Below, in pieces: positions 1 through 64,000 of a stretch of 64,000 bases of DNA (within the stretch, counting starts at the first letter, position 1; each line of letters begins with the position of its first letter). Made by a program: the position numbers and the translations under genes. The stretch is from the sequence record OR532817.1. One strand, given 5' to 3'. The notes below the pieces were generated by a model. That model was not told the origin of the DNA. It saw only the letters and a program-made list of their open reading frames with translations, and did not search any database.

Positions 1-144
1 AAATCAGAAGATAATTTTTTTCAGGATTCACTAATTAATGATTACAATGATTTATCATTCGAAGATATTGACAAAATGATGAATATGTTCTATAATGTAA
101 AAAATACAAGTTTATCCCTATTTGGTGAAGATGATGAAATTTGA
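1..144 (+). CDS. partial ORF (5' end outside window), FQxS-motif paralog family
   Basis: Frame 1 reads KSEDNFFQDSLINDY...DEI*, carrying the family motif. Confidence 0.6.
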   Translation, partial: KSEDNFFQDSLINDYNDLSFEDIDKMMNMFYNVKNTSLSLFGEDDEI

Positions 145-571
145 TTTAGAAAAATTTCTGGATTTGGATTTAGATTCATTTTATATCAGAAAGTTTATTT
201 TTAAACCACACACAAATGTGGTTGATTATGCTGTGATTGAACTACATGAATCAGACTATACAATTTGGTACGATGTTGATGATTGTATTCAACTAAAGGA
301 ATGTGATGAATGTAAAGGTTATGTTCTGTTGTATGACCTCAATACAAATGAAATTACATTAAAAACTTCACATTATGATGAATACGGTATTATAACAAGG
401 CGTGAATGTATTGCATTTTCACATGATGATTATACAGAAGAATCATTTTTTATGATTAGTACCTTACATGATGTTGGGGAATTTACATTTGAAACTTTCG
501 ATAAATTTAATAAAATTTTGAAAAAGATTAAATCAATGATCAAGGAAATTGAAAATGAACAGTCCAAGTAA
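122..571 (+). CDS. hypothetical protein, FQxS-motif paralog family
   Basis: EESFFMISTLHD near C-terminus; likely start at ATG 131. Confidence 0.7.
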   Translation: MVKMMKFDLEKFLDLDLDSFYIRKFIFKPHTNVVDYAVIELHESDYTIWYDVDDCIQLKECDECKGYVLLYDLNTNEITLKTSHYDEYGIITRRECIAFSHDDYTEESFFMISTLHDVGEFTFETFDKFNKILKKIKSMIKEIENEQSK

Positions 572-968
572 ATGTTATATTGTTATTCGTAATGATTTGG
601 ATATGCCAGAAGGTAAATTTGGTGCACAAATCGGCCATGGCATCGACGCAGTATGGAAAGAGGTTTTGGTAGCCGGTACAATGGTGCGTGCTGCAAATAT
701 AGCCAATGAACAACCAAAAGAGCGTGATATCAAAATACAGGATGAAATTTCTAAATGGGTGAGTGACGGTAGTAGAAAGATTATTCTAAAAACAAAATCA
801 GAAGACGAATTACTGAAAATTTATAAAAAGGTATTGTCTGAAGGTTGTATTTGTACTAAAATTTATGATTATGGATTTAATTTTTTTGATGGTTTAACTT
901 TAACTGGTATTGTTGTACATCCATGTTCAGAAGAAATTAAAACATTAAAACGAGTACGCTTATGGTAA
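549..968 (+). CDS. peptidyl-tRNA hydrolase, PTH2 family
   Basis: YIVIRNDLDMPEGKFGAQIGH, W..DG.RKIILK..SEDELL, IYDYG and C-terminal RLW match the PTH2 pattern. Confidence 0.85.
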   Translation: MKMNSPSKCYIVIRNDLDMPEGKFGAQIGHGIDAVWKEVLVAGTMVRAANIANEQPKERDIKIQDEISKWVSDGSRKIILKTKSEDELLKIYKKVLSEGCICTKIYDYGFNFFDGLTLTGIVVHPCSEEIKTLKRVRLW

Positions 969-1336
969 ATGAACATTTAAAAGAATTATGTTCTTTATGG
1001 AAATCATCTGATGTAAGATTTGAACCTGTACCCAAAAATAAAGATAACTGGCATAATTCTATTGTTATGGGGTCTTGTGGTTTTTTTCTTTTACCTATGG
1101 TACTAAAAGATAAAAAAATAGGTATTGTTGTTTTATACAATGATCTTATATATTATTTTTTGTACGAAGATGAAATTCAGTACGTACATAATAATATGAC
1201 ACATACATACAAAAGAGATACCACACATGAAGAACTATTCCAACTAAGTACTTTATACGATGAAGTAATTCAGTACGAAAACTTAATAGAAGTTTTTAAC
1301 TTATATGATTCCGTAATGGAGGTAATTGAAAGATGA
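962..1336 (+). CDS. hypothetical protein, FQxS-motif family
   Basis: EELFQLSTLYD. Confidence 0.7.
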   Translation: MVNEHLKELCSLWKSSDVRFEPVPKNKDNWHNSIVMGSCGFFLLPMVLKDKKIGIVVLYNDLIYYFLYEDEIQYVHNNMTHTYKRDTTHEELFQLSTLYDEVIQYENLIEVFNLYDSVMEVIER

Positions 1337-1599
1337 TGAGTCATTGTAAATTCTGGCTTCCTGTTATGGTTGTTCTGTTTATTATTTTTACAGTAGTAAA
1401 CTATAAAATCCACAATTCTATCCCAAGACAGCCTACAGCAGAAGAATTAGCTATTCATCAAAATAGTGGTTTATATGCTGAAGTACTCAATAAAATCAAA
1501 AACAAATGTACTGGTATCAGTGATAATGAAAGGAATACATTCTATACATGTCAGGACGGTTCTAAAGTATCAGTGATTTACTGGAAAACGACAAGATAG
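1333..1599 (+). CDS. small protein with N-terminal membrane anchor
   Basis: FWLPVMVVLFIIFTVV; ATGA overlap with upstream gene. Confidence 0.6.
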   Translation: MMSHCKFWLPVMVVLFIIFTVVNYKIHNSIPRQPTAEELAIHQNSGLYAEVLNKIKNKCTGISDNERNTFYTCQDGSKVSVIYWKTTR

Positions 1600-1652
1600 A
1601 AGTGGGTATGTCACTCGTGATTTTGATAAAAATGGTAAATTAATTTCGATTT

Positions 1653-2117
1653 ATGGACACCCAGATGATATCTAAAGAACAACATAAATTTTTATTCAAA
1701 ATATTGAATTCTTATAAAGTTAATAAGTTCAGTACTAAACACGTTCACAATCCAAAAATTGTTATTAGCACAAGGCGATATATAGGAAATAACAATTTTG
1801 AAATATACTTATATAAAGGAACTATTTCATTAGAAATTCAAAGATATGGTATTATTTTATTATTAATTGAGTATAATCCAATTTCTGACAATATGACGTT
1901 ATTATTCAATGATAATGAACATTGTTCTGAAATCGTTTATCGTATAAACGATGTGTCGGAAATTCTTGAAGAAGATGGTTATTTTCAACAAAGTCTTGTA
2001 CAAAATCTTCCATTGGAATATAATGATTTTTGTAAAATGATGGATGATATCACAACCATCAAAAATTCAATGCTGGAACGTTTTGAGTTAACAGAGCAAG
2101 TGTGCGACAATGACTAA
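1653..2117 (+). CDS. hypothetical protein, FQxS-motif family
   Basis: EDGYFQQSLVQN. Confidence 0.65.
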   Translation: MDTQMISKEQHKFLFKILNSYKVNKFSTKHVHNPKIVISTRRYIGNNNFEIYLYKGTISLEIQRYGIILLLIEYNPISDNMTLLFNDNEHCSEIVYRINDVSEILEEDGYFQQSLVQNLPLEYNDFCKMMDDITTIKNSMLERFELTEQVCDND

Positions 2118-2425
2118 AGTAGTTAGAAAGCGTAGAGTACTTGATAATGATGAATTCAAATCATTAGAGATTCATCGTCAATTGTTTCACCGTCTTTGTG
2201 CTGGTGAGAAACAAATTGTAGTTACTGAAACATATGAAGAACCAGAAAATATTTTCGGTAACTATTTCCCTGTATTCAATTTGTATATTAAACGCGGTCT
2301 ATTGGAAGTAATTACAATAGATCAGTTACCGGAAGATGAACATGAATTTACTGTTATCAAATAAAGAACCATTAGATCGTGATGATGATTTTTATGATGA
2401 ACGTTATGGTGAATCGGAGGAATAA

Positions 2426-2980
2426 ATGGGATTAGATATCTATAAATGTAAAATTAGTTCTACTAAACAAGAACATGGTTTTATTACATGTTCACAAGAA
2501 GAGATTGATTCAAATAAATCAATTAAAGAACTATTCCAGAAATATAAAAATTATATCAATATCGGTACTGAAGAATACATTGATATTGAACAAAGTTTAA
2601 TCAAATTTAATCTTTCTGATGAATGGTTTTTATCTGGATATGAGTTCAATGAAGATGAGGATTCATATTATGCAGTATTTGATTGTACTCTACCATTGTT
2701 CGATTCCGTAAAAGTATTATATAATGAACTTATCACAAAAGATGAAAAAGTTTATACATTATATTACACAGAAATTGGCTATCAACGTAGAGATTATAAA
2801 CCTGGAATCTATGCTGATCTTTGGGGATGTGACCAGGACGATCATGACGGATATTACAGCTTAAATGTAGTAACAGATAATTCAGTACTTGAACTTGTTA
2901 AAATGTATGCGAATGAAAATTCTCCACTTAGTCAATGGGTACTAAACGATAATGATGAATTTATTATCTTCGATTATTGA
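2426..2980 (+). CDS. hypothetical phage protein (MGLD- N-terminus)
   Basis: GGAGG RBS upstream, 184-aa ORF. Confidence 0.7.
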   Translation: MGLDIYKCKISSTKQEHGFITCSQEEIDSNKSIKELFQKYKNYINIGTEEYIDIEQSLIKFNLSDEWFLSGYEFNEDEDSYYAVFDCTLPLFDSVKVLYNELITKDEKVYTLYYTEIGYQRRDYKPGIYADLWGCDQDDHDGYYSLNVVTDNSVLELVKMYANENSPLSQWVLNDNDEFIIFDY

Positions 2981-3010
2981 GATTTCTAAATAAAATAAAA
3001 CATAACAAGG

Positions 3011-3904
3011 ATGTTTATGAAACCTATTACAGTACTGTCATTATTCAATGGGATGAGTGTTGGGTATATGGCACTAAAGAATGCTGGAATTCCAGTACAG
3101 AAATATTACTCATCAGAAATTGATAAATTTGCTATTGCTGAATCACAAGCCAACTACCCTGATATTATTCAGTTAGGTGATATAACTAAATGGGAAGATT
3201 GGGATATCGACTGGGGTAGTATTGACCTACTTATTGGTGGAAGTCCTTGCACTGATGTAAGTTTTGCGGGAAAACAAGAGGGGTTAGTTAAACCAGATGA
3301 AAACGGTGATGGTGGAACACGAAGTGGTTTATTTTATATAATGATTGACATATTCAATCATATTAAATCGATAAATCCAGATTTAAATTTTTTATTTGAA
3401 AATGTCAAGATGAAAAAAGAACATCTTGAAGAATTTAATAATAATATAGGGGTTGATCCTGTTCTAATCAATTCTGAATTATATACTGCTCATTACAGAC
3501 AGAGATATTACTGGATTAGCTCAAATAAGCTAATTCTCAATCCCGCCTACAAAGCCCCAGTACTTCAAGATATTATTGTTAATGCATATGCTGACAGGAA
3601 TAAATCATATTGCATTGATGCCAATTACTGGAAAAAGGGGAATATCACACAGTACTTACGCAAATCAAGAAGACAGATTGTTTATCTAAGAGACGATCAT
3701 GATTTATTCAGTACTGAAGAAAAAATTAACACATTTAAACTCAATGTTGACTATAGACATTTAACAGTAGACGAAGTATGTTTATTACAGGGTGTACCTG
3801 TTGGATTTTTTAAAGTAAGTAGTGCAACACAAGCATACAAAATGCTAGGTAATGGATGGACATGTCCAGTTATTGAACATCTATTAAAGGAAATTTTCTT
3901 TTAA
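3011..3904 (+). CDS. DNA (cytosine-5) methyltransferase
   Basis: Motif I LSLFNG, catalytic GGSPC, FENV, RQRYYW, C-terminal LGNGW. Confidence 0.92.
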   Translation: MFMKPITVLSLFNGMSVGYMALKNAGIPVQKYYSSEIDKFAIAESQANYPDIIQLGDITKWEDWDIDWGSIDLLIGGSPCTDVSFAGKQEGLVKPDENGDGGTRSGLFYIMIDIFNHIKSINPDLNFLFENVKMKKEHLEEFNNNIGVDPVLINSELYTAHYRQRYYWISSNKLILNPAYKAPVLQDIIVNAYADRNKSYCIDANYWKKGNITQYLRKSRRQIVYLRDDHDLFSTEEKINTFKLNVDYRHLTVDEVCLLQGVPVGFFKVSSATQAYKMLGNGWTCPVIEHLLKEIFF

Positions 3905-4163
3905 TTAATAATTTAAAATGGAAAATAATATCAATGATTAGTAAAGTATACCTTGATGAAAATATTTCTAACGAAAAGACACAATATGCAGTTTATGATT
4001 CCTTGACTGATAAAGTACTAACAGAGAGTATTCATTCTTATAAAGCAGATGTTGAAGATTTTATGACACACAAATATGGTGCTGACTGGCGTACAACACA
4101 TGCATTATATAGTATTCGTGAAATTAAAATCGTAGTGTTATAAACATAAAAAATCCACCACAT

Positions 4164-4634
4164 GTGGATTTTTTTCTATTTGAGATTAAATTAAACATGC
4201 ACAATGAAGAAATAATTCATTTTCTTAAATTTTATTTAAAATGTATCAATGCTGTTCAAAAATTAATGGAATGTGAAATGATTAATGATTTTAATGATCA
4301 TTTTGGATATATAAGTACAGATTTATATCCCGTCCCTGTTCGTGTAAAATGGAATTATGATCAAGATGCATATGCAATGCAACTGGATTTTGATTTATTC
4401 GGACTTCCATCTAAATTTAATATAGGAACTATTTGTTTTGATAAAAATGATGGTTTGATTTTAATTTGTTATAACAATAAAACAGAAGTTGATTTAAAAT
4501 ACAGAGAATGGTTAACCGAAGAATCGTTTTTTCAGTCCTCGTTAATATATGATTTTGGTAGTACTGATTTACAGTACTGGAATAAATGCATTGATTTATT
4601 TGAAAAGATTGAAGGAGTAATGACAGGTGTTTAA
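4164..4634 (+). CDS. hypothetical protein, FQxS-motif family
   Basis: EESFFQSSLIYD followed by STDLQYWNKCI, shared with 14754..15263. Confidence 0.7.
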   Translation: MDFFLFEIKLNMHNEEIIHFLKFYLKCINAVQKLMECEMINDFNDHFGYISTDLYPVPVRVKWNYDQDAYAMQLDFDLFGLPSKFNIGTICFDKNDGLILICYNNKTEVDLKYREWLTEESFFQSSLIYDFGSTDLQYWNKCIDLFEKIEGVMTGV

Positions 4635-5998
4635 AATAAAACTAATTTATACCACTGGTAATACATTCGAAACATGTGAAGTAGAAAGATTTATTAATTG
4701 CGAATGGGATACAGAAGAGAAAGCTATTCATGAAATGAATAAAATCCGAGAGCACTGGATTTTCAATAAAAAAATTAGTTCTACTCGTGATAAAGACACA
4801 AAGAAGAAATTGGTATCACAAGCTATTATGCAATCATGGTATAAACCTGGTAATTCTGAATATACTATGTTGCTAGTTGATAATGATGGAAATTCTTTTG
4901 AAATGTATGCTGCATGGTTAGGGTATTTTGAAATTCTTCACAGTACTGAAGTAGTCAATGCAAACCAATTAGACAACTATATTGATTTCGATGAATTAAG
5001 ATCAAATATGGGATTGTGGTAATGGATGGTCCAACTGTACTAAAAATCCTTCGTAAATTTAAACACCCAATGTTGTTCGGACGTTGGAAATCGTTAAAAG
5101 AAAATAAAAATACCGACGATCAAAAAAATATCAATTATAGATGGTATTGGGATTATTCAAAAGATTATGGTGATTCACTTTGTATAAAAATTAAATTCAA
5201 TAATTATAATAAATGGTCTAGAGATAAAAAATACATATATTCATATGATATTCACTTATCAAAGGAACATGTATTTATTTTTCATAGAAGTTACAACAAA
5301 TTTTCATTGAAACATGATGTACTATTTTCTATAAATGAATTATATGAAGATTTAGAAAGTGTATTATTTCAGCAATCATTATTGACTTCTACTGGTATGG
5401 TGAGTACTCAAGAAATTGAAGTAATAAGAGAATTAAAAGATATATATTTTTCAAAGGAGAAATGATGGGTTACGGTATTCAATATAAATGTAATGATGGT
5501 AAGGACTATTATTGTACTAGTTCTTCATTTGTAACTTTTAGTGAAAATATTGAAAGTATAGCAGAATTTGCACAACAAAAAACTGCATTAAAAATAGCCA
5601 AAGGATTTACAAAATCAACTGATATGGAAGCTGAATTTGGTGAAGGTAAATTGTTTGTTATTAAAGTGGTGAAAGTTCCACTTCAAATAGAAGAAGTACA
5701 ATTAGTAAAATTAAAACCCGGCTACCGAATTTATTCTGAAGAGGAAGAAGAATATTACAAAGGTAGTAAAAAATCAACAAAACGTTTTGGATATCACAAT
5801 AATTTTGATGAATTACATTGCAGTACTGTGTTTAAAACAGAAAAAGAAGCACAAAAAACAATTGATGCAATTCTTGATGATTATCATAGTTATGCATATA
5901 AGTATGACCCTAGTGATAAACAGTATGAACAACATGTCAAATCTTATGAACCATATTATCTAATGGCAAAAAAATTAAAAATTGTTTATATTGAATAA
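4627..5998 (+). other. three translationally coupled hypothetical CDS (4627..5022, 5016..5465 FQxS family, 5462..5998)
   Basis: Overlapping start/stop codons; ESVLFQQSLL in the second. Confidence 0.65.
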
Positions 5999-5999
5999 A

Positions 6000-6035
6000 A
6001 AAAGCTTGACATATAAATTGACAATGATATAATAA
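6000..6035 (+). promoter_or_regulatory. sigma70-like promoter
   Basis: Tandem TTGACA hexamers followed by TGA-TATAAT. Confidence 0.7.
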
Positions 6036-6063
6036 TTGCAAATCAACCAAAGAGTAACTTTGT

Positions 6064-9990
<3,927 letters not shown>

Positions 9991-10000
9991 TATCAAATCC

Positions 10001-10024
10001 AGCCACTACATATATGTAGTGGCT
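10001..10024 (+). terminator. intrinsic terminator hairpin
   Basis: AGCCACTACA-TATA-TGTAGTGGCT then T-rich. Confidence 0.6.
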
Positions 10025-10069
10025 ATTATTTTAAGTACATGTTTAAGTACATTACAAAGGTGAATTATC

Positions 10070-16157: not shown

Positions 16158-16217
16158 AAATTTTAATTTAAATAGTACTTGACAAAAATGTTCAGTACTG
16201 ATACAATAAAGAATATT

Positions 16218-22662: not shown

Positions 22663-23247
22663 ATGTTAAGTACTTTTAAGCGAGTCTATTTAAGAAACAA
22701 CAAAATGCAAGTTCGTTTACACAAAGACGAAGCCGATTCGTTTATGGCTAAAGCTATTGTTAAATCTGAATTGTACAAACGCCTTTCACCAAAAGAAAGC
22801 TCGCCATATGGATTTAATCACCCGCACAGCCATTATGTTGGATTGGTGTGTGAACACGCTGCTTATGTGTTGTTCACGGAACTGGAAGAAATGACTGGCA
22901 TCAAATACGATATCGATCCAGCATTCCAGAATAGTAAAAGAGATGGTGAATGTGATTTAATTGTTAACAATCTACGTATAGAAGTGAAGGGTATTAAGTA
23001 CAAATCATGGACTAATTATGGTCCGTGTATCAGTACAAGACAATTAAAGAATATTGAGAAAAAAGCAGATATCATTCTGTGGGTTTTGTATAATGAAAAA
23101 CGTCATGAATTTTCGTTTGAAGGTTTTAATTATGTAAAAGATGTACATACTGTACCAGTTAAAATTACTGGTGCTAAAGGTAAACCACAAATTAAAAATC
23201 ATCCAGTTATTGATATTATTAAACCATTACAGGAATTACCAATATGA
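22663..23247 (+). CDS. putative PD-(D/E)XK nuclease
   Basis: GLVCEHAA ... CDLIVNNLRIEVKG; own promoter TTGACA..TATAAT at ~22599-22627. Confidence 0.6.
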   Translation: MLSTFKRVYLRNNKMQVRLHKDEADSFMAKAIVKSELYKRLSPKESSPYGFNHPHSHYVGLVCEHAAYVLFTELEEMTGIKYDIDPAFQNSKRDGECDLIVNNLRIEVKGIKYKSWTNYGPCISTRQLKNIEKKADIILWVLYNEKRHEFSFEGFNYVKDVHTVPVKITGAKGKPQIKNHPVIDIIKPLQELPI

Positions 23248-26996: not shown

Positions 26997-27893
26997 ATGA
27001 AAGAAGTTGATCTAAATGAACTAAGTGCTGAAATCATGGAAACATTATTTGATGAATCTGATATTGAGCAATCAAAAAATATTAAGAGTACAAAAGATAA
27101 TATCAGTCTCAAACATCCAACTGGTGTTACAAATGAAATGCTGTTAAATGAAATACATAATGGTATTAATGTAAAACAAAATCGTGAATTACTTATCCGT
27201 TATAATTATCCACTAGCAGTCAGTATTGCTAAACGTTGTAAATGTTATATTCCAGAAGAAGATAAAATTTCTTATGCAGTAGAGGGTCTTTTGAATTCAA
27301 TTCATAATTTTGATGTTACAAAAGGTGTATTATTCAGTACTTATGCCAGTGCTTCCATTTACATGACAGTGATGAACATGAGTAATGAACATAATAATTT
27401 AGTTTATATCCCACGCCATGTAAGTGTACATAATGTTAATATTCGTAAATTTGCAAATGAATACGAAAAGAAACACGGCAAAAAATGCAAACCTGAACTT
27501 ATTTCAAAAGAACTCGGAATTAATGTTGATACTGTTGAGTTGTGTTTGTCTTTCCAGGAAACCACATCTCTTGATACTCCAACTTCTGATGATAGTACTG
27601 CACTAATTGATACCATTGCCAGTGATTGTAACGTAGAACAAAATGACGTTGATAGTATTGTTCTGGAATTGATGAATGAACTAGAACCAAAAGAAAAGGA
27701 AATCCTTTCCAGAATTTATGGTTTGAATGGATATGCACCAGAAACCTATGATAGCTTGATTAGTACTGGATTTTATGATAAAAAGGGTAAACGTATTACT
27801 GTTCGCGGAACTTTACATTACAAATTCAGTACTGCACTTGAGAAACTAAAGCGTTTGGTTCGTCTAAAAGGATTAACTGCCAAAGATGTTTAA
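26997..27893 (+). CDS. RNA polymerase sigma70-family factor (divergent)
   Basis: Region 2 EGLLNSIHNFDVTKGVLFSTYA, region 3 ELISKELG..SLDTP, region 4 ELEPKEKEILSRIYGL. Confidence 0.85.
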   Translation: MKEVDLNELSAEIMETLFDESDIEQSKNIKSTKDNISLKHPTGVTNEMLLNEIHNGINVKQNRELLIRYNYPLAVSIAKRCKCYIPEEDKISYAVEGLLNSIHNFDVTKGVLFSTYASASIYMTVMNMSNEHNNLVYIPRHVSVHNVNIRKFANEYEKKHGKKCKPELISKELGINVDTVELCLSFQETTSLDTPTSDDSTALIDTIASDCNVEQNDVDSIVLELMNELEPKEKEILSRIYGLNGYAPETYDSLISTGFYDKKGKRITVRGTLHYKFSTALEKLKRLVRLKGLTAKDV

Positions 27894-39246: not shown

Positions 39247-40677
39247 TTGCTATTGGTAAATATTAATGATAACAAAGAATCAAGGATGATTTTTATGGCA
39301 AAGAAAATTACACAGAAGGAAGCTGAAGAACGAGTAAAACAAAAGTGCTTGGAGAAAGGATATACGTGTGGAGAATTCGTTTATATTGGAAATGATAAAA
39401 CTTTTTTACCTCTAACGTGTGATAAAAATCATTTTTGGAATACCACACATTATAATAACTTTATGATGAAAAATAAAGGATTATGTCCAATATGTTTGGG
39501 TAGATATAAAACTACTGAAAGTTTTATTCAAGAAGCAAAACAAAAAAGAACTGATTTGAATTTTGATTATAGTAAAACTGAATATGTAGATAGTAAAACA
39601 AAAGTTTGTATAATAGATCCAGATTATGGTGAATTTTGGATTACTCCTGGTAATTTTTTATATGGTTATGGAAATAAACAAAGAGCTATAGATAGAGTTC
39701 ATGATAAACAACGTCACGGTACTGAAGATTTTTTAATTAAAGTTAAAGAAAAGAATTTCAATATTAATTATGATTTTAGTAAAACTGAATATGTTGATTC
39801 AAAAACTAAATTATGTATAATTGATCCTGAATATGGTGAATTTTGGATTACCCCGCATAGTTTTTTGAATGGCAATTGTCACAAAGAACGAGGTAAGCAA
39901 AAGAGTAGAGAACTATTTGCTTTTAGTACTGAAGAATTTATTATAAAAGCAAAAGAGAAATTTCCTGATATAGAATATAATTATAGTAAAGTTATATATA
40001 AAAATAACAGTACTAAAATTATAATTATAGATCCAGATTATGGTGAATTTAAAGTTACACCTGCCAGCTTTTTTAATGGTTCGTGCCATCCAATAAAAAG
40101 AAAAGAAATAAGAAGAAAAGCTAAGATTAAATCATCAGAACAGTTTATAAATGATTGTAAAAATAGATTTCCTGATATTAATTATGATTATAGTAAAGTT
40201 GATTACAAAACTGCAAGAACAAAAGTTACTATAATAGATCCAGAATACGGGGAATTCAATATTACTCCTAATAAATTTTTAAGTGGTCAAAAACATCCAA
40301 ATCATTCTATAACTGGATATAATCAATATTCATCTGGATATTTTTATATCAATAAGATCATATATGATAATAATATATATTATAAATTTGGTATAAGTAA
40401 TAATTATGAAAAAAGATTTAAACAATATAATACAAATTATTTAGAATCATTAAAATATAAATGTTTTTATCATGAAGATGGTTCTATTATTTTTAATATA
40501 GAATCAATTATTAAAAAGAACAAAAAGATAAAAAGAAAAGCTTTACCTAAAAATATTTTTAATGATGGTTATACTGAAACCATACATGAATCAAATTTAA
40601 ATGATATTCTTGATATTATAAAAAAATATTCATTAATAGAAGTACCAATATATGTTGACAATGAGAAATCTATATGA
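39247..40677 (+). CDS. putative free-standing homing endonuclease: four ~65-aa repeats plus C-terminal GIY-YIG/T5orf172-like domain
   Basis: Repeats DYSK.EY....TK..IIDP(D/E)YGEF.ITP; C-terminal YFYINK...YKFGISN..EKRF; probable start ATG 39295. Confidence 0.7.
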   Translation: MLLVNINDNKESRMIFMAKKITQKEAEERVKQKCLEKGYTCGEFVYIGNDKTFLPLTCDKNHFWNTTHYNNFMMKNKGLCPICLGRYKTTESFIQEAKQKRTDLNFDYSKTEYVDSKTKVCIIDPDYGEFWITPGNFLYGYGNKQRAIDRVHDKQRHGTEDFLIKVKEKNFNINYDFSKTEYVDSKTKLCIIDPEYGEFWITPHSFLNGNCHKERGKQKSRELFAFSTEEFIIKAKEKFPDIEYNYSKVIYKNNSTKIIIIDPDYGEFKVTPASFFNGSCHPIKRKEIRRKAKIKSSEQFINDCKNRFPDINYDYSKVDYKTARTKVTIIDPEYGEFNITPNKFLSGQKHPNHSITGYNQYSSGYFYINKIIYDNNIYYKFGISNNYEKRFKQYNTNYLESLKYKCFYHEDGSIIFNIESIIKKNKKIKRKALPKNIFNDGYTETIHESNLNDILDIIKKYSLIEVPIYVDNEKSI

Positions 40678-48914: not shown

Positions 48915-49595
48915 ATGGTTAAATTATTAAAAACATTAGTTCTTATTACAATATTTTATATTCCATTTGCATTTGGTGATATTAATTGCAGTGATAAGTT
49001 TCTTAATTCAACTATACCTGATGTTAAATACGATCAACAAGTTTGTTATACTAAATTTGCAGTACTATACAATTACAATTATAAAATCCCAATGGTGAGT
49101 GCTGAATACTTAACGCCAGATGATATCAACGCATCAAGTAAATTGAAGAGAAAAGATGCATTCCATTCAGATAAATCCATTCCACCAGAATTTAATCAAA
49201 CCGTGGCTATGTATAAAGGCACTGGATATGATAAAGGTCACATGACACCAGCAGGTGATATGGATAATGCTTTTGATCAATCAGAAAGTTTTAGCTTAGC
49301 AAATATGACTCCACAGACTAAAAAGTTAAATGAAATAGTATGGAGAGGAATTGAAGAAAAAGTACGAAATTCTATATTATCTGATGGTGCCGCCTATGTT
49401 ATTACTGGTAGTATAGTTCAGAATGGTTCAAATAGACTTAATACTATTGTCATACCAGATTATATCTATAAAGCAGTATACTTTGTTAATACAAAAAAAT
49501 CCATTGTATATGTAGCAAAAAATGATAATTCAGGTGCAGAAGAGGAATTATCAGAAAAGGATTTTGAAGTGAAATATAAAATTAAACTTTTTTAA
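48915..49595 (+). CDS. exported DNA/RNA non-specific endonuclease (NucA/Serratia nuclease family)
   Basis: Signal peptide; YDKGHMTPA, SFSLANMTPQ...LN..VWRGIE, IP..IYKAV. Confidence 0.88.
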   Translation: MVKLLKTLVLITIFYIPFAFGDINCSDKFLNSTIPDVKYDQQVCYTKFAVLYNYNYKIPMVSAEYLTPDDINASSKLKRKDAFHSDKSIPPEFNQTVAMYKGTGYDKGHMTPAGDMDNAFDQSESFSLANMTPQTKKLNEIVWRGIEEKVRNSILSDGAAYVITGSIVQNGSNRLNTIVIPDYIYKAVYFVNTKKSIVYVAKNDNSGAEEELSEKDFEVKYKIKLF

Positions 49596-49661: not shown

Positions 49662-50105
49662 ATGACTCGTATTAATTTAGTACATGTTAAAGAACTCGCT
49701 GATCAACATTTGATGGCTGAATACAGAGAACTTCCTCGTGTGTTTGGTGCAGTTCGTAAACATGTACAAGATGGCAAACGTGTTTCTGATTTCAAAATCA
49801 ACCGTACTTACATCTTAGGTACAGGACATGTGACATTCTTCTATAACAAATTATTGTACTTGCAGAAGCGTCACATTGATATTGTAAATGAATGTTTACG
49901 CCGTGGAATGAAGATTCAAAACACCGACATAAACGACCTCAGTGGTATTCCTACAGCTTTCTGTAATGATTATAACCCATTACCTCATGAGATCGATGTA
50001 TCTCGTTCCAGATTGATTGAGAAGATTCAGATGAAGCCTACCTGGTATAAGTTTACCAATGTGGAGTTTCCATCTTATTATATTACTATGTTGGATAAGT
50101 ACTAA
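49662..50105 (+). CDS. denV: pyrimidine-dimer DNA glycosylase (endonuclease V)
   Basis: MTRINL...[18 protein letters not shown]...[10 protein letters not shown]...KPTWYK. Confidence 0.95.
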
Positions 50106-53100: not shown

Positions 53101-54266
53101 TCGCACATTAATGGATACACTTATTGAAAATAGAAAGTCAAGTGATGCATCGTTACAATTGAGTGATTCAGTACTGAAGGCATTGAAAGATTATAAATTA
53201 GAAGTGATGGAAATTAATTTCCCAGATACTGATTGGTGGGATGATTATTGATTGTGAAAATACAATCTTAATTTTATGAACTAAATTATCTAAAGGTGAA
53301 ATAATGCAATACTCTATCTATGCTCGTATGGGAGTTGATTATGAATGGAACAGACTTCGTACAGTTTACAATGAAGAGAAAGCAATTGAACTGAAAGAGT
53401 ATTACGAACAAACATGGCGTGTCGTTGAAATTCGCAATGAAAGCAAATAAGTGTTGACAACATATATCAGTACTGTATAATATAATACAATCTTAATTGA
53501 AAAGGTAAAAACATAAATGAAAGTTACTCTGACTGGTGGTACAATTAATGTAGCAACAATCAAATCAGTACTGGAAAATAATAGTCAAGTATATATTTCA
53601 CTTCCGATTAATGATGTTTGTGAAATTTTAGTGACTCGTTCGGCATCGCATTTTAACGGGTATATTAAACAAGATAGTATTGAAGTTAAATACGCCGAAC
53701 GAGATTGTGGTGAAATCCAGTGCATGGCAACAGAATACTTCAACATCAATATGATGGAAAAAGCTGCAATGGCTGCCGTTGAGCGATATAATTCAGAAGA
53801 TCCATGTGAATTTTCTAATTATTCAGTGGCGTTTGAAAATACATTTATTAAAGAATAATAAAATAAAGTCATACCTTTTCCTATAATATAGTATTAATAA
53901 AATAGAGAATATTGTATGAAACTTGATTATGAATTAATAAGCAAAACGTTTAAATTAATATATTTTATTTTTGGTTATAGTAAAAATTCTAATTTTTTTC
54001 CAATATTATTTGACCTTGATGAAAATGATATTCACCAAGAATACAATAAAATATTGAATAGAGAGTTACATTTATCAATTAAAGAATTAGTAATTAATAA
54101 GTATATTCATTATAAAAATAAAAATTTTGATGGATATTTGCGAATTATTGGATATGATTTTGATACATCGAAATTAATAGTAAAGGCACCCAATAATACA
54201 GGAATTTTCCAAATAACTTGGGTGAATTTAAAAATTTTTGACAGTATACCATCAAAAAAGGGTTGA
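50146..54266 (+). other. cassettes of small hypothetical CDS (about 14 ORFs, several membrane)
   Basis: Coupled ORFs after hybrid repeats at 50662, 52665, 52908 and promoter 53455..53482. Confidence 0.5.
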
Positions 54267-54320
54267 CGAAAGTCAGCCTTTTTTGCTATAATGTGTTTAT
54301 TAAGAAAGGAGAAATAAAAA

Positions 54321-55091
54321 ATGCATCCTCGTTTAGTTAGAAGTCAGAAAATCCAGAAAAACTTCGATTCGATGCTCGCAGTACTGGAAAGTATGCTTAA
54401 ACCAAATAGCCCTATTAATAGCATGATTGTAAGTGGTGCTCCGGGTATTGGTAAAACATACTCACTCTCTAACCGACTCAATAAAGCACATTCTAATGCT
54501 GAATGTAATGTAACTACCGTTAGCGGTAAAATGACTACCCTAGCACTCTTCGAAGTACTGTACAAAAACCGGTTCAGTACTAATATCATTGTACTTGATG
54601 ATATGGACAGTATTTTTGATTCAGAAGATGGTATGAATCTGCTCAAAGCAGTACTTGATACTTCAAAACGTACAGTATCATATATGTCATCTTCTAAGTA
54701 CTTAAAAGATAATGGTATCCCAAGTACTTTTGATTTTTTTGGTAAAATTGTATTCATTACAAATAAAGATTTAACACGTATTGCTGCATCTAAAAGCAAA
54801 CAAGCACCACATTGTCAAGCATTGATTTCTCGTTCAGTGTATATTGATCTTGAAATTCAAAGCAAAGAAGATATCATGATCCATATCGAAAATGTTATGC
54901 TCAGTACTAACATTCTAGAAAAATACAATGTGAATCAAAATGGTAGTAACATGATTCTTAATTGGATGCTGAAACACCAGGAACGTCTACAGTCTCCATC
55001 ATTACGTACACCTGTGCTTATTAGTGCTCTGTATAATTCCAATCCATATGATTGGGAAGAAATTTGCGAAAATGTTTATCTGGAGAAATAA
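54321..55091 (+). CDS. AAA+ ATPase
   Basis: Walker A GAPGIGKT, Walker B IIVLDD, IVFITN sensor, SRS arginine finger. Confidence 0.85.
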   Translation: MHPRLVRSQKIQKNFDSMLAVLESMLKPNSPINSMIVSGAPGIGKTYSLSNRLNKAHSNAECNVTTVSGKMTTLALFEVLYKNRFSTNIIVLDDMDSIFDSEDGMNLLKAVLDTSKRTVSYMSSSKYLKDNGIPSTFDFFGKIVFITNKDLTRIAASKSKQAPHCQALISRSVYIDLEIQSKEDIMIHIENVMLSTNILEKYNVNQNGSNMILNWMLKHQERLQSPSLRTPVLISALYNSNPYDWEEICENVYLEK

Positions 55092-55405: not shown

Positions 55406-55535
55406 TGAAACCAGAACAATGGATCATCGATGATATGCGTGCTATGCGTAAGATTGAAAATAAATCATACGAAGAACAAGCATACTTAGATCTTCTTCAA
55501 TGGTATGTTAAAGTAATCCAATCAAAGGAATAATT

Positions 55536-58311: not shown

Positions 58312-58384
58312 AAAAATAGTTCCTGAACTTGACAATGCTGGAATTATTATATATAATAACATAATAAAATAAAAGAGGCACAAA

Positions 58385-58972
58385 ATGAAACGCATAACTC
58401 GCAGCAAAAATGTGATCAGGGATAGATTTCGCAAGGTAAACATTATTAAGTACAGTACTATTGCATTAGCATTAAGTACTACATTTGTACTCACTGCATG
58501 TGATGAACCAACAAATGTAGACGTATACAAATCATTAGAACAATGCAAAACTTCTGGAAAAAATCCAGCACAATGCGAAGAAGATTACAAAAATGCACTA
58601 AAGCAAAGTGTCAGTACTGCACCGCATTATAAATCACAAAGCGAATGCTACGCAGACTTTGATACAGTATGTCAGGAAGGACATTACAGTACTGGTGGTA
58701 TGTTCTTCTATCCTATGATGACCGGATTCCATAGTTCAGGACAAGGATATCATTCACAACCTTTATATAGTCATAAAGGTAATTACGTTGATGCTGGTGG
58801 AAATAATTACGGATCAACTTACAGTACCACTACTAACAGAACTGTACCAAGATCCGGTCTGACACAAAAAGCACCAACCAGTACTATAACCAGAAGTGGA
58901 TTTGGTAGTACTGTTTCAAGTCGCAGCTTTTCAAGTTCTCATAGTTCATCAAGCCATTCATTTGGTGGTTAA
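58385..58972 (+). CDS. DUF1190 (YgiB-like) lipoprotein
   Basis: Lipobox FVLTAC; VY.S...C...C...Y..AL...AP.Y.S..EC.A.F; Ser/Thr-rich tail ending FGG. Confidence 0.8.
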   Translation: MKRITRSKNVIRDRFRKVNIIKYSTIALALSTTFVLTACDEPTNVDVYKSLEQCKTSGKNPAQCEEDYKNALKQSVSTAPHYKSQSECYADFDTVCQEGHYSTGGMFFYPMMTGFHSSGQGYHSQPLYSHKGNYVDAGGNNYGSTYSTTTNRTVPRSGLTQKAPTSTITRSGFGSTVSSRSFSSSHSSSSHSFGG

Positions 58973-58989
58973 ACAATAAAGGAAAATAA

Positions 58990-59622
58990 ATGAAATATTC
59001 AAGCCTGAATCTTTATAATAATCCAGCAGTCGCTACTCATGCAATCACTGGTAGTATCAATGATTCTTCTTATAAAGAATTCCGTGAGTTCATCAAGGCA
59101 GTACTGGAAAATAATCAGAAAATCTCCGACGAAGAACGTATCCATAAAGAGAAAGAAGAATTCAATAAAATTCATAACCCAGAAGCTAAACCAGAATTCT
59201 TTAGCCCTAAAACTAAAGTACAACGTATTAATCTTATCGTAGATTCATATGGCGGTCAATGTTCTTCTATGACCAGTATTGTTGCACTAATGAATAGTTC
59301 TCCTATTCCTATTGATACATATTGCTTCGGTGCTGCCATGTCAGCAGGATTTATGATTTTTATTCATGGAAAAAATCGTTATGTAGGTAATGCAGCAGAC
59401 CTTATGATGCATAGTTTAAGTACTGGTGTATATGATCACGCACCTGGTATTAAATCAAAAGCCGAACACCTGCTGAAAATTAATACAGTCTATCAACAAA
59501 TGGTAGCAAATAAAACTGGTCTTACAATGGAATGGCTTAAAGAGCACGAAGAAAAGGATATGCACTTCCTTGCAGATGATTGTATTGAATACAAAATTGC
59601 AGATGCAATCATTGAGGAATAA
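58990..59622 (+). CDS. clpP: ClpP-family protease subunit
   Basis: IVDSYGG, TYCFGAAMSAG (Ser), LMMH (His), DMHFLA (Asp), IADAII. Confidence 0.85.
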   Translation: MKYSSLNLYNNPAVATHAITGSINDSSYKEFREFIKAVLENNQKISDEERIHKEKEEFNKIHNPEAKPEFFSPKTKVQRINLIVDSYGGQCSSMTSIVALMNSSPIPIDTYCFGAAMSAGFMIFIHGKNRYVGNAADLMMHSLSTGVYDHAPGIKSKAEHLLKINTVYQQMVANKTGLTMEWLKEHEEKDMHFLADDCIEYKIADAIIEE

Positions 59623-59841
59623 TATATGACAATATTATTCAGTACTAAAGATCCGGTAGGCGATTCTAGTAATGTAGTTAGTAACTTCTACAATCATGTT
59701 CGTCGTAAGACACATCATGGTTCATGGGGTGCTGATAAACATGCACGTAAGCTATTCCCGAGGGGAAAGGCGTATGATCGTCTGTTTGAATTACAATTGG
59801 ATTGTTGGAAAAACCGCTACGATTATTTCTAAGAGAATACT

Positions 59842-60231
59842 ATGACTACACAACTAACCGATGATGGTCCGATTACTGTACAAGTACTGTTTTCTTTTGT
59901 ACAAGCTACCAAAGATGAACTACCAGCACTCTTTGTTTGCACTGCGGAGTACTTAGAAGCTAACGAAGAGACTGACAATGACATTACGCCAGATCAATTC
60001 CCTGATATCTTTGAAGCTGGTGAACCAAAAGATGAAGATGATTGCATCTTCTACTACGTCAAAGGTTCTACACGCTTCCGCTTCTATGACATGGGCTATG
60101 GTACATGGGGAATTGAAGAATTGAAAGATGGTGAGTATGATTGTGTAGGTGCGGTTGATGAGAAAGCATTGATGGCTCTACTCGGACAAGCTGGCCTCGT
60201 AAAAGATGATTCATTGATCCAGTACTTCTAA
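59842..60231 (+). CDS. acidic hypothetical protein
   Basis: 129 aa, strongly D/E-rich. Confidence 0.65.
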   Translation: MTTQLTDDGPITVQVLFSFVQATKDELPALFVCTAEYLEANEETDNDITPDQFPDIFEAGEPKDEDDCIFYYVKGSTRFRFYDMGYGTWGIEELKDGEYDCVGAVDEKALMALLGQAGLVKDDSLIQYF

Positions 60232-60300
60232 AATAAAGGGTTGACTTCGGTCAGCCTTTTTTGTTATTATATCAGTACTATATCAAAGAGGTAATTAATA

Positions 60301-60900
60301 ATGAAAAAAGTCAAAAAATTATACAAAGATTGGTACAACAAAATTAAACAACAACATTTAAAAGAAAAACGCAACCCGCAATCTACTTATGTGTTTAGAT
60401 GGACTTTCAAATCTTCAGATAGTATGAAAAAGATTAAACCGGGTGCTACATTTAAAATTGCTAAAGTACTAAAAATATTTCTCAGAGCTAATAATATCCA
60501 TCTCAATGAAGTAGGGTGGAATAATAGAGGGAAAATTACTTGTACTAATAAAATTAAATCAGCAACCTTTGATGTATATATCAAAAATATTCCATGCTCA
60601 ATTATGGTATCCGCCACAGGAGCATTTATACTCACCAATTATCATAAACATAAAAAAAATAATACATTAGAAAATTGCATTGTATATAATTCACATAATG
60701 ATCTCTTTCTTCAGGGTCGTCAAATACTTGAAGAATTAAACATCGATTACAATAACTTAACAGAAGAAGAAATATTTCAACTAAGTACTATATTCGATGT
60801 GTATTTCTATAAAACCGTCAAAAATATAGGAATAGAATTACACAATACCAAAAACCTAAACTGTAATAAACTCGTAGCAGTACTAAACAAATACAAATAA
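60301..60900 (+). CDS. hypothetical protein, FQxS-motif family
   Basis: EEEIFQLSTIFD. Confidence 0.65.
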   Translation: MKKVKKLYKDWYNKIKQQHLKEKRNPQSTYVFRWTFKSSDSMKKIKPGATFKIAKVLKIFLRANNIHLNEVGWNNRGKITCTNKIKSATFDVYIKNIPCSIMVSATGAFILTNYHKHKKNNTLENCIVYNSHNDLFLQGRQILEELNIDYNNLTEEEIFQLSTIFDVYFYKTVKNIGIELHNTKNLNCNKLVAVLNKYK

Positions 60901-60922
60901 AACCAATGAAGGATTTAAGTAA

Positions 60923-61456
60923 ATGATCATCCAAATCAATAGCTATAAAACAAAAGAAGAACTGACCACCCTTATTATTAAAGCTATTCAAAAAGGGGAA
61001 AGTTATATCAAAATTCCATTAGATAAAACAAGCAATCGTAATATGGTTATTTCCCAAATTGATAAAGATTTTGATATCAATATATGCTATATGGAAGAAA
61101 CCAGTACAGATATCATCTACTCAGGTACTGAATCATTTAATCCAGACCAAATCGTTACAGCAGCGGATAATTGCGTCCAACGTTATTTCAGTACTGAACC
61201 AAATAAAACAATCAGAGAACAACAAAAAGTAGAAAAACATAGCAAAAACTTCCCCGGTGGTATGACCGTTAAAGAACTAAAAGAATTAATTAAAGATTGG
61301 CCTGAAACCAATCAGTACGGAGAAGATACTTTAGTATATATCAGTACTGAATCAGATACGGATTGTACTGTACATTCTTCGTGGTGTTCATCAGTAAGAA
61401 CTAATGATAATGGTACACTTGTGTATGACTTGACTCTTGATACAGAACAAAGATAA
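60923..61456 (+). CDS. hypothetical protein
   Basis: 177 aa; followed by terminator-like ACTCCCCGTA/TACGGGGAGT. Confidence 0.65.
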   Translation: MIIQINSYKTKEELTTLIIKAIQKGESYIKIPLDKTSNRNMVISQIDKDFDINICYMEETSTDIIYSGTESFNPDQIVTAADNCVQRYFSTEPNKTIREQQKVEKHSKNFPGGMTVKELKELIKDWPETNQYGEDTLVYISTESDTDCTVHSSWCSSVRTNDNGTLVYDLTLDTEQR

Positions 61457-61959
61457 TTAAAAAGACTCCCCGTAAAACTCGATCAAACGGATTCTACGGG
61501 GAGTATACTATATTGGACGATATGGTCATTATAGTAGACAATTTAATGGATATAGGTGATTCAGTACTGATAATAATGAATATAAATGAATAAGAATAGT
61601 ATAGTACTAATAATAATGAATAGGAATTGATAAGAATGATTCAGTACTATTAAGAATGATTAAGTACTATTCAGTACTATTCAGTACTGATATGCCACTA
61701 AGTCCGTTTATAAAGTCGCACCCAGTGGGCTACATTTGTAACTATTCAGTACTTAATAATTCAACTCATCAATTATTACAAACCTAACTATTTCAAATCT
61801 AATTACCCCATTAACTAAATCCCCAAATTATATATTAGCAAAAATCCCAGTACTAAATCAAGAAAAATCTGGATTGTCGATGAGAAAAAATCTGGATTTT
61901 AAAAATTTTGAAATGTCGTTCATAGTTCAGGAAAAAAATGAAATCATAACAAGAAAAGT

Positions 61960-61990
61960 GTTGACACGGACATACTGCCATTATATAATG
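61960..61990 (+). promoter_or_regulatory. sigma70-like promoter upstream of ~500 bp of non-coding DNA
   Basis: GTGTTGACA...TATAAT; no ORF downstream. Confidence 0.6.
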
Positions 61991-63228
61991 TAATCCTCAA
62001 GACGAGAGAATGTTCTCTCATAGAAATGCGAAGAAGCCGAGTTTATCTGTCCCTGCGTGAGTGGGCTAACATTTGAATAGGACAATACGTAGATGAATGA
62101 AAAAGGTTTAAAGGGAAGTATTTGATTCCCTGTAGTATAGTTAATGAGTTAGTACTGATTTAGATGTAATCATTGAGTAGTACTACTGTCGCAAAGGGAA
62201 ACCTTTGGCTTCCATGGGGAGTGATGACAGAAGGGCATTATCCTCCATATAGAGTTACTGCTAATAACTCCGTAAGTTGGGTTGTGGCAAACCTCCTAAA
62301 ATAAGTAATAACAGTACTACTGCTTGATGGATTTGTTACCCGTAGGTAGTACTGATTTTAATTTAAAGAATACCCTCCGCCAAGAAAGGTGCATGTAACT
62401 TGAACATGTGAACTACGGGAACAGTACTGAACCATTCAGTACTGATTCCTCTCCAAATTTTGGATACAATAATGCTAGGCTTCAGTTAGTACTGAGTGAG
62501 AATGATAATGATTCTCATTTGAATTGGATGAGAACGATTCTCATTTACTATTGCAAATGATAATAGATTGCATTTACGAATGGTTCTCATTCGCAGATGA
62601 TAATGATTCTTATTCAAAATTGATTTTTCCGATTTTTTCCATTAGTCCCCCTTCAGCGTAGGGTTAATTTTTCCCCTGCCGAATCGGTTTTATATTTTCA
62701 AAATCTGGATTAATCATATCAGTACTAACCCAGATAAACAATACCCCTTTACAAATCTTTACAAAAAGATTCTAAATGCGAATACAAATGATAATGATTC
62801 TCATTTACAGTACTGAATACTTTTCCCCACGCTCTGGCGTCTCCGGTTCCTCCCGTCTATATAAACATTATACAGTACTGAAATATTAAGTCAATACTAT
62901 TTTTTCAAAAAGATTAAAATAAAATACTTGCAATCCTGATATTATTATATTATAATGTTTACAGTACTGAGAAAGTGCTTTTGCCCGCTAGGGTGCGGGG
63001 GAGTATGCGTTAAATGAGAATGATAATCATTTACAGTACTGGACGGATTTTCCCACCCTCGGGGGTCTCTTTTTGTCTATGTGGTAATTATACAGTACTG
63101 GAATACTATATCAAGTCTCTTTACAAATCTTTACAATCCACCCGGGGAGATTTATCTTTACAATAAAAGTACTTGCATAATTCTTTCAGTACTGCTATTA
63201 TATATTCATACCAAACAGGAGAACTACC

Positions 63229-63399
63229 ATGAAATACGCGTACTCTTATTTTATTGTAAACGGTGAACGTTTGACCATCGGCCAGGCAGCGGTAAAGCAT
63301 GAAATCATTTGCGATGATCTGGCAAAGATGCTACCAGGTGAAACGCAAGAGTTTTACAAGGGCTTTCAGAAAGTCACTGTAACACGTTGTGAAGATTGA
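63229..63399 (+). CDS. 56-aa early hypothetical protein (not in ORF track)
   Basis: Own promoter, AGGAG RBS, MKYAYSYF...RCED. Confidence 0.6.
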   Translation: MKYAYSYFIVNGERLTIGQAAVKHEIICDDLAKMLPGETQEFYKGFQKVTVTRCED

Positions 63400-63464
63400 T
63401 CCAGTATTAGGGGTAGGAATACCCCTAAAACGTCCTGTAACGCATTATAAGAGGTTTTTATAAT

Positions 63465-63692
63465 ATGGCTATAGAAGTTAACGCTGGGGATATAAAGGCG
63501 GCTGTACTGCGTACCCTGAAAGCATACGGCAGAAAGCTGAATGATCGCAACGTTCCCTATTATTTCCTTGCTGCTACTCATAAAATGGCAATCGCTGAGG
63601 CTCGCGGGTGGCTGAATGATCGCAGTACTGTAAAGAGTACCAGAACAAGAAACGCAATTGAGCGATGGATAAAAGAATTAAATCATTTCTAA
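63465..63692 (+). CDS. 75-aa hypothetical protein
   Basis: GAGG RBS, higher-GC coding sequence. Confidence 0.6.
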   Translation: MAIEVNAGDIKAAVLRTLKAYGRKLNDRNVPYYFLAATHKMAIAEARGWLNDRSTVKSTRTRNAIERWIKELNHF

Positions 63693-64000
63693 TAGTTCAG
63701 TTATGGAATCAGTACTGATTCCCTGTTTAGTACTGAAATTATAAGGGGAGTTAATTAATTCCCCTTTACAAATCTTTACAAAAGAATGGTTGACATAGTA
63801 TCCCAGTACTGGTATTATGTATTCATAGACAGAACAAGTCTTTGGCCCACCGGGTGCGGAGGAGTATCTATTAGATTGAATGATAATGATAATGATTCTC
63901 ATTTACTGTACTGAATATATTTCCGCACCCTTTTGGGCTTTTCGATTACTTTCTACTTGTTAATAAGTATACCATAATCAGTACTGAATGCAATGGTCTT

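Follow-up and report, generated by a model that had tools for sequence, protein, structure and literature searches.

HIP1 (GCGATCGC) of cyanobacteria is a hyper-abundant short palindrome, and the function of HIP1 and of the alternate HIPs is still unresolved (PMC5861425, PMC4390886). It is the nearest known phenomenon to the one described here, the excess of the hexamer AGTACT in a stretch of 64,000 nucleotides from sequence record OR532817.1, which we call the window. It matches, at 100% identity, positions 62001-126000 of Klebsiella phage RCIP0023, a 350-kb RaK2-like jumbo phage (Alcyoneusvirus) of around 31% G+C, and for the genome-wide mapping of the motif we used the entire record. The annotated genes of the window are all on the + strand and nearly all of them are labelled 'hypothetical'. 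An earlier note, made from the letters of the window alone, had drawn attention to AGTACT and proposed that it is a genome-wide self tag.

The phage word and HIP1 are alike in that both are hyper-abundant short palindromes found in all reading frames as well as in intergenic DNA, the excess lies at the DNA level, the word is shared by a clade and absent or replaced in relatives, and the genome has orphan methyltransferases. However, the phage word is viral and AT-rich, with a 6-bp core and graded flanks, and it has fixed promoter positions and a cluster at the genome terminus. Furthermore, HIP1 sites are individually conserved and periodic, whereas the scattered phage sites turn over and are spaced in a Poisson-like manner.

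Other known systems share single features with it. The SlmA-binding sequence GTGAGTACTCAC, used in nucleoid occlusion in E. coli, is a 12-bp palindrome read by a dimeric helix-turn-helix protein (PMC3020112). It has the identical AGTACT centre and is also scattered over a chromosome, but the SlmA flanks are G, T and a purine and the phage flanks are T, T and C. Abundant phage DNA-binding proteins such as TF1 of SPO1 and p6 of phi29 preferentially coat the phage genome, act at early promoters and genome ends and repress early transcription; nevertheless, what TF1 responds to is hydroxymethyluracil DNA, p6 responds to DNA shape, and neither reads an iterated word. The OR1/OR2 operators of lambda and 434 are, like the paired phage copies, two dyad sites on one helix face that flank core promoter elements, and the TG of the downstream phage copy is that of an extended -10 promoter; the phage word, however, has around 900 further copies outside promoters. 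In phage P1, the pac site has clustered methylatable hexamers beside the cut, and Chi and the DNA uptake sequences are over-represented words. As in P1 pac, a cluster of short identical words adjoins the phage terminus, although the RCIP0023 cluster is not within the terminal repeat and another sequence forms the cut junction. With Chi and the uptake words the motif shares a genome-wide excess of a short word that weak selection would keep, whereas those words are asymmetric and are read by known machines.

From the sequence evidence given below, we see about an even chance that AGTACT is the recognition site of a symmetric-dimer, double-stranded-DNA-binding factor that is specific to the enterobacterial RaK2-like lineage and uses the site in three ways. 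The factor would most probably be encoded by the phage.

AGTACT is enriched at the DNA level

The window contains 210 copies of AGTACT, against 14.4 +/- 3.6 in dinucleotide-preserving shuffles (the largest value was 23), and 61 copies of the octamer CAGTACTG, against 0.47 expected. In the whole genome there are 954 copies of the hexamer versus 118 expected (around 8-fold) and 248 of CAGTACTG versus 2.95 (84-fold). AGTACT is also the most deviant 6-mer of the window, with an observed/expected ratio (O/E) of 9.9, and the next palindrome reaches only 1.9. The over-representation in genes, promoters and the terminal region is therefore real and larger than the earlier note had claimed; its local counts were exact (28 copies between 61.5 and 64 kb, 9 between 54.3 and 55.4 kb), and its base-composition expectation of 0.3 per kb is correct (21.3 per 64 kb). 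Up to window position 61.4 kb the density is around 3 per kb in coding and non-coding DNA alike, and 10-kb bins across the genome hold 14-35 copies each, also where structural genes run on the opposite strand. At record positions 123.5-144.5 kb, a stretch that extends past the window end, there is a hot zone with around 7 copies per kb.

Short palindromes are generally avoided by phages, and this genome is no exception. Ten 6-bp palindromes have zero copies in the whole RCIP0023 genome: CTTAAG, with 118 expected, and AGCGCT, AGGCCT, CAGCTG, CCTAGG, CGATCG, CGTACG, CTGCAG, GAGCTC and GCATGC, with 25 expected each. Their absence is extreme restriction-site avoidance, and therefore AGTACT is the lone exception to a strong avoidance of palindromes. 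In a genome exposed to the enzyme, the target of a ScaI-type restriction enzyme should itself be avoided or else be fully modified, and AGTACT is not avoided, whereas a many-fold excess throughout the genome, in non-coding DNA and in all frames of coding DNA, is what a HIP1-like word shows. That a palindrome-avoiding genome pushes one palindrome 8-fold, and its octamer 84-fold, in the opposite direction is a strong signal, and the motif is indeed genome-wide, as the earlier note had it, and contrary to the avoidance of other palindromes in the same genome. Full-text literature searches gave no link between AGTACT and these phages, and the papers on RaK2, fEgEco12, Sharanji and PA5oct, as well as the comparative jumbo-phage papers, do not mention it.

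Regarding the coding sequences, all three frames are used in the open reading frames (ORFs) of the window: 81 copies are read as AGT-ACT, 66 as xxA-GTA-CTx and 19 as xAG-TAC-Txx. These 166 copies compare with 47.7 +/- 6.1 in a synonymous shuffle that fixed each protein and its codon usage, and with 20.0 +/- 4.3 when the codons were permuted. The excess thus survives a codon-preserving shuffle, the control by which the earlier note could have been refuted, and it supports an action of selection or drive at the level of DNA and not of the peptides. That the two controls differ shows that the proteins have adapted too. Actually, Val-Leu (1.96x) and Ser-Thr (2.07x) are the two most over-represented dipeptides, whereas the reversed pairs Leu-Val and Thr-Ser are not raised, and 81 of the 140 Ser-Thr pairs are written AGT-ACT, with 21 expected.

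The motif had also been thought to be sparser in the homing endonucleases, as a sign of their recent arrival. No ORF was significantly depleted after correction for 141 tests and the sole annotated intron endonuclease, which lies outside the window, has 0 copies against 1.9 expected, so that neither the sparseness nor the recent arrival has statistical support. Among individual genes, the lowest densities are those of tail-fibre/depolymerase genes on the - strand at record 224-240 kb (for instance 1 copy in 2247 bp and 3 in 3573 bp), which would fit a more recent horizontal acquisition. The densest coding stretch of the window is an AAA-ATPase-like gene at 54321-55091, with 7 copies in 771 bp (9 per kb), a density that is non-significant after multiple testing.

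The excess is found again in relatives: 142 copies versus 16.8 expected in 50 kb of E. coli phage 121Q, 138 versus 7.0 in the terminal repeat of E. coli phage fEgEco12, 71 versus 13.2 in Salmonella phage Munch and 76 versus 13.2 in Yersinia phage fHe-Yen9-04. In all three samples of 40-50 kb from relatives AGTACT is the top 6-mer. More distant relatives, Pseudomonas phage PA5oct and Agrobacterium phage Atu_ph07, are depleted in it (1 versus 10 expected in each), and a Vibrio jumbo phage shows no enrichment (7 versus 13). A 50-kb sample of the E. coli K-12 host is at expectation (12 versus 13.3), and the density in the phage, 2.7 per kb, is around 11 times that of this sample. The excess is common to genera that are less than 30% identical in nucleotides, and it has persisted long enough to alter proteins.

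Two other words were observed on the way. At 100-130 kb of PA5oct, CTGCAG, which is absent from RCIP0023, is 6-fold enriched (14 versus 2.3), often as tCTGCAGa; the sample is small, and as an 'alternate palindrome' of that lineage it is too weak to claim. In RCIP0023 the + strand has 16 copies of Chi (GCTGGTGG) and the - strand 5, with 0.8 expected on each, and this second, strand-biased over-represented word may protect against RecBCD.

The flanks of AGTACT show a preference that is symmetric and graded (T at -3 and C at -1, G at +6 and A at +8), which gives approximately TTCAGTACTGAA, and one-off variants at the outer positions are themselves 2.4-3x enriched. To judge from these sequences, such graded flanks and enriched variants are typical of the weight matrix of a binding protein and not of a strict enzyme site. 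The preference is the same in RCIP0023 and 121Q (P 0.9) and differs between 121Q and Munch (P 3e-4), so it tracks the phage lineage rather than the host. LexA was considered because both its half-site words, CAGTA and TACTG, lie within the octamer, but their arrangement is wrong and the 18-bp spacing that would create a LexA box occurs at background level.

Promoter, terminus and scattered copies

The hot zone coincides with the direct terminal repeat of around 20 kb that PhageTerm predicts for phage Muenster (1-20030; 20,030 bp); in fEgEco12 the terminal repeats have been confirmed experimentally (PMC13070987). Among the 41 sigma70-like promoters of the hot zone, 22 have an AGTACT that starts 8 or 7 bases before the -10 box, and the terminal TG of this downstream copy is the TG of a sigma70 extended -10. 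Furthermore, 11 of the 41 have a second copy at -28/-27, the final T of which doubles as the opening T of TTGACA. Copies paired at exactly 20 bp are found 20 times in the genome, 19 of them in the hot zone, with around 2.6 expected. The same architecture is present in fEgEco12, in 18 and 10 of 40 promoters respectively. Four promoters had been cited before as having AGTACT ahead of the -10 box with its TG as the extended -10, and all four hold, at positions that differ by a few bases (Table 1).

When RCIP0023 is compared with Muenster, the terminal-repeat copies are conserved (37/39, 10/10 and 92/100; 139/149 in all) against a baseline of 78% for background hexamers; for the -10 hexamers the figure is 35/39. 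Dyad symmetry, a fixed position in the promoter, helical phasing and conservation are found together in these copies, as in operators. The copies in a promoter context are around 60-80 of the 954 (around 7%).

At the terminus, a cluster of seven copies precedes the left end of the terminal repeat. The first base of Muenster corresponds to window position 61701, the last copy of the cluster lies 13 bp before it, and the junction at 61700/61701 reads ...GATATGCCACTA/AGTCCG. The cluster had been noticed as a tandem with a 10-bp phase in the terminal region; both the phasing (sites at 61643, 61663, 61673 and 61683) and the placement are correct. In fEgEco12 three (G/T)ATTCAGTACTG copies lie within 100 bp outside the confirmed left end, and the junctions are near-identical (GATATCCCACTA/AGT in fEgEco12 and GATATGCCACTA/AGT in RCIP0023). 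Thus, repeated words stand beside the mapped left end and are kept in fEgEco12, which is the pattern of a pac- or cos-type cluster. Beyond the right boundary there is an array of variant copies that is confined to Alcyoneusvirus and is not conserved.

Other elements of the terminal repeat were observed as well. Its first 1.5 kb (61701-63228) has no annotated gene and contains promoters, GC-rich hairpins and repeated modules; Rfam gave no family match for this non-coding leader. Fur-box-like repeats, with 2-3 mismatches to GATAATGATAATCATTATC, are found in the leader at 62498-62620, 62784-62810, 63016-63034 and 63882-63906, and several of them directly abut CAGTACTG; their sequence hints at iron/Fur-linked control or at titration of Fur. 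A second class of early promoters, beyond the window at record positions 132717, 134564, 138229, 140872 and 143023, is without AGTACT. In this class the -35 TTGAC lies inside a GC-rich hairpin that is followed by a T-run (GGGGTTGACTTCGGTCGACCCCTTTTGCTATTAT), so that terminator and promoter overlap.

More than 90% of the copies are scattered ones. They have no preferred distance to start codons, and outside the hot zone their spacing is Poisson-like, with a coefficient of variation of 0.94-0.97 and maximum gaps as in random placement. We found no periodic or even spacing in a test that covered short range only, not 10-90 kb. Turnover was followed on the terminal branches of a four-genome comparison (42.6 kb aligned) with a context-free substitution model. 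There were 11 gains of AGTACT against 2.5 expected (P 6e-5), an excess that ranks 2 of 833 testable hexamers, rank 1 being the overlapping GTACTG, and 13 losses against 15.9 expected, which is near-neutral. The gains arise at all six positions of the motif, not only at C or G. We infer from this contrast a weak scaled advantage of around 1.7 per site, which would give an equilibrium excess of around 5-fold, near the observed one. Across genera, orthologous genes keep around 3 copies per kb, and only 7 of 40 are at the same aligned position in 121Q (chance 0.13).

Table 1. Positions of the AGTACT elements and of the genes discussed in the text (window coordinates)
Feature	Position	Strand	Remarks
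Dispersed AGTACT copies	1..64000		Consensus approximately TTCAGTACTGAA; 210 in window
Seven-copy AGTACT cluster	61563..61700		Unit TATTCAGTACT; spacings 40, 40, 20, 10, 10 bp
First 2.3 kb of the ~20-kb direct terminal repeat	61701..64000	+	22 AGTACT, 21 non-coding
Early-type sigma70 promoter, paired copies 20 bp apart	16174..16207	+	AGTACT 16174-16179, abutting -35 TTGACA (16179-16184); AGTACT 16194-16199, ending in extended -10 TG; -10 at 16202-16207
Consensus sigma70 promoter	53454..53481	+	TTGACA 53454-53459; TATAAT 53476-53481; AGTACT 53469-53474 in spacer
Paired-copy promoter	63168..63207	+	AGTACT 63168-63173 abuts TTGCAT; AGTACT 63188-63193 before TATTAT; upstream of first terminal-repeat gene (63229-63399)
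Promoter TTGACA-N17-TATTAT	63790..63818	+	TTGACA 63790-63795; TATTAT 63813-63818; CAGTACTG supplies TGn of extended -10 (AGTACT 63805-63810)
194-amino-acid basic conserved protein, PD-(D/E)XK (restriction-endonuclease-like) fold, undescribed family	22663..23247	+	D...E-x-K motif
C5 cytosine DNA methyltransferase	3017..3904	+	Pfam PF00145, E 1.7e-30; ortholog of RaK2 ORF194 and 121Q gp91
Phage sigma-70-family factor (regions 2 and 3)	26997..27893	+	Annotated sigma factor in RaK2, 121Q and KP13-7

Candidate readers and competing explanations

Dyad symmetry, graded flanks, helical phasing and operator-like positions together point to a dimeric DNA-binding protein, and we infer that such a dimer reads the site. 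Its optimum in the Klebsiella and E. coli lineages would be TTCAGTACTGAA. Among the sigma70-type pre-early promoters of the 20-kb repeat, about half would offer it paired operators 20 bp apart on the same helix face, the upstream one abutting the -35 box and the downstream one closing with the extended -10 TG. In this way it may control, and most likely would shut off, the first wave of transcription. The phased cluster that precedes the terminal repeat at its left end could help to form or protect the genome terminus. Finally, the scattered copies, around 900, would load the factor over the whole phage chromosome. Individually they would be almost dispensable, with their density upheld by weak selection per site: new copies are fixed at four to five times the neutral expectation and old ones are lost near the neutral rate, and this pressure would suffice to raise the share of Ser-Thr and Val-Leu in the proteins.

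Going further, these phages may mark their own chromosome by sequence and not by base modification, with a dedicated protein that separates phage from host DNA, coats or organises the 350-kb genome, silences the pre-early promoters and helps to define the end; this broader claim we hold tentatively, at somewhat less than even chances. From genus to genus, the reader and the flanks of its word would then evolve together. As to the self tag of the earlier note, the idea of a phage DNA-binding protein as its reader is favoured by the graded symmetric flanks, the 10- and 20-bp phasing, the lineage-tracking flanks and the 11-fold density over the host, but the reader itself was not found.

Several observations weigh against a dimeric phage-encoded reader. 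Among the around 50 proteins scanned there was no classical DNA-binding domain, 40+ ORFs gave no helix-turn-helix family, and searches of the around 50 proteins in Pfam, PHROGs, PADLOC and the PDB returned only an H-NS-like protein and ORFans. Pfam was blank for the 20 most conserved ORFs of the window, and the small terminal-repeat proteins, the H-NS-like one excepted, have no recognisable DNA-binding family. The lead that we do have, the protein at 22663-23247, would have a nuclease fold and not a classical repressor fold, as modelled, and a Vibrio phage has a homolog of it but no enrichment of the motif. In addition, the scattered sites shared with RaK2 are 108 of 122, versus 104.9 expected, which is no significant conservation, and therefore a non-selective drive is possible for them. 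The counts of gains and losses (11 and 13) are also small.

The H-NS-like protein belongs to an early gene inside the terminal repeat (record 129553-130053). It has an N-terminal H-NS oligomerisation domain (Pfam E 4e-6) and a divergent C-terminal DNA-binding part, and it is a possible modulator of the silencing of AT-rich phage DNA by host H-NS.

Regarding the other explanations, AGTACT, or its GTAC core, might be the target of a phage DNA methyltransferase, so that the excess, the promoter copies and the terminus copies act through the methylation state, and incoming fully methylated DNA would behave differently from freshly replicated DNA. There are methylation precedents for the three contexts, namely the HIP1 orphan methyltransferases, Dam-sensitive promoters and the methylation-gated pac of phage P1. 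One gene of the window is for a C5 cytosine methyltransferase, which might modify the motif and has orthologs in Alcyoneus-, Asterius-, GAP32-, CBB- and Erwinia-type members, the genome also encodes a Dam-family enzyme, and HIP-type palindromes correlate with cognate methyltransferases (PMC4390886). However, a tracking of the motif by either enzyme is unsupported by the distribution of orthologs. A search by organism name (E<=1e-60) gave no close C5 ortholog in the motif-rich Munch, Yen9-04, also motif-rich, is not among the matches listed, and the Dam-type family is spread over many unrelated phages. The RaK2 paper, which has the only published bisulfite statement for that phage, reports methylated CpG (data not shown there), but CpG is absent from AGTACT. 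Moreover, the graded flanks and the enriched one-off variants suit a binding protein better. Methylation stays a rival reading of the motif, which we regard as unlikely.

A conserved host protein of the Enterobacterales, such as a nucleoid-associated protein, a division regulator or a transcription factor, might instead be recruited or titrated by the sites. The enrichment is indeed restricted to relatives that infect Enterobacterales and is absent from the Pseudomonas and Agrobacterium ones, and the core hexamer is the centre of the SlmA site. Nevertheless, SlmA needs G, T and a purine at positions 1-3, where the phage favours T, T and C, and the flank preference differs between an E. coli phage and a Salmonella phage despite their similar hosts; the DNA-binding proteins of E. 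coli and Salmonella are nearly identical. Because the flanks required by SlmA are absent and the preference follows the phage lineage, a conserved host factor is improbable. SlmA itself was rejected as the reader: there is 1 full site in 350 kb, only 11 of the 954 copies are half sites with a matching 5' flank, and G at -1 is depleted to 5.9%. No SlmA homolog was found in the phage, and no other host operator is known to us to match AGTACT.

There is similarly little likelihood that AGTACT serves as the site of a restriction-endonuclease-like enzyme of the phage, such as the PD-(D/E)XK protein at 22663-23247, whose cutting or nicking would start recombination-dependent replication, process concatemers at the terminal repeat, or degrade host DNA while the phage sites are protected. 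This protein is strongly conserved and clade-restricted, with 57-72% identity across the enterobacterial genera listed and no match from PA5oct or Atu_ph07. It has an invariant E/D/K constellation and a confident AlphaFold2 model (predicted local distance difference test score 94), and its best Foldseek neighbours are restriction endonucleases, with the blunt cutter HincII first; the terminus also adjoins a cluster of the motif. But the Foldseek matches are weak and non-significant, the match to the clade is weak evidence because any clade-specific core gene shares that distribution, the junction of the terminus is not AGTACT itself, and for an enzyme to enrich its own cleavage site is counter-intuitive. 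Given the Vibrio phage, which speaks against this explanation too, the protein remains a lead only, as a predicted candidate reader or processor of the motif. A 'type II restriction endonuclease' of Munch was also considered, and it turned out to be a generic MGME1-like PD-(D/E)XK exonuclease.

Still less probable is a sequence-biased process of mutation or repair, for instance biased gene conversion or short-patch repair, by which AGTACT is recreated without any reader. The gains above expectation with near-neutral losses, and the lack of conservation of scattered sites above background between close relatives, are what such a process would produce. However, the deamination neighbours AGTATT and AATACT are not depleted (O/E 1.09) and the gains occur at all six positions, so that a drive by very-short-patch repair was rejected. 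The terminal-repeat copies are conserved at fixed promoter positions and the flanks are co-selected symmetrically, and a sequence-specific enzyme would still be required.

Finally, it is hardly credible that the motif is only a promoter element of RNA polymerase, an extended -10 together with an extension of the -35 box, or that it acts as a signal in the RNA, because although it supplies the extended -10 TG and abuts the -35 box in many early promoters, the few copies in a promoter context contradict this for the scattered ones, there is no preferred distance to gene starts, much of the genome, opposite-strand genes included, has a similar density, symmetric flanks are unexpected for an RNA signal or for polymerase contacts, and the leader has no Rfam match.

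Neighbouring genes and significance for RaK2-like phages

Three further genes or gene pairs of the window were noticed. The sigma-70-family factor gives context for the transcription programme and we do not claim it as a reader of the motif. A Serratia-type non-specific DNA/RNA endonuclease (PF01223, E 1e-36; 48915-49595) adjoins a homolog of T4 endonuclease V (49662-50105). A protein of 460 amino acids (39295-40677) has weak matches to papain-like peptidases (C39, C58), and its RaK2 counterpart is annotated as 'endonuclease'.

RaK2-like phages are in use in Klebsiella and E. coli phage work, and annotators of this clade can use the paired-copy architecture in practice to predict pre-early promoters and the genome terminus. 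For HIP1, an open problem of around 30 years, the motif provides a much smaller and genetically tractable parallel. There is a real chance that AGTACT, itself one of the iterated genome words, is a new kind of sequence-based self-marking in a virus. If this is true, it would be a viral counterpart of the HIP1, uptake-sequence or Chi-type genome words.

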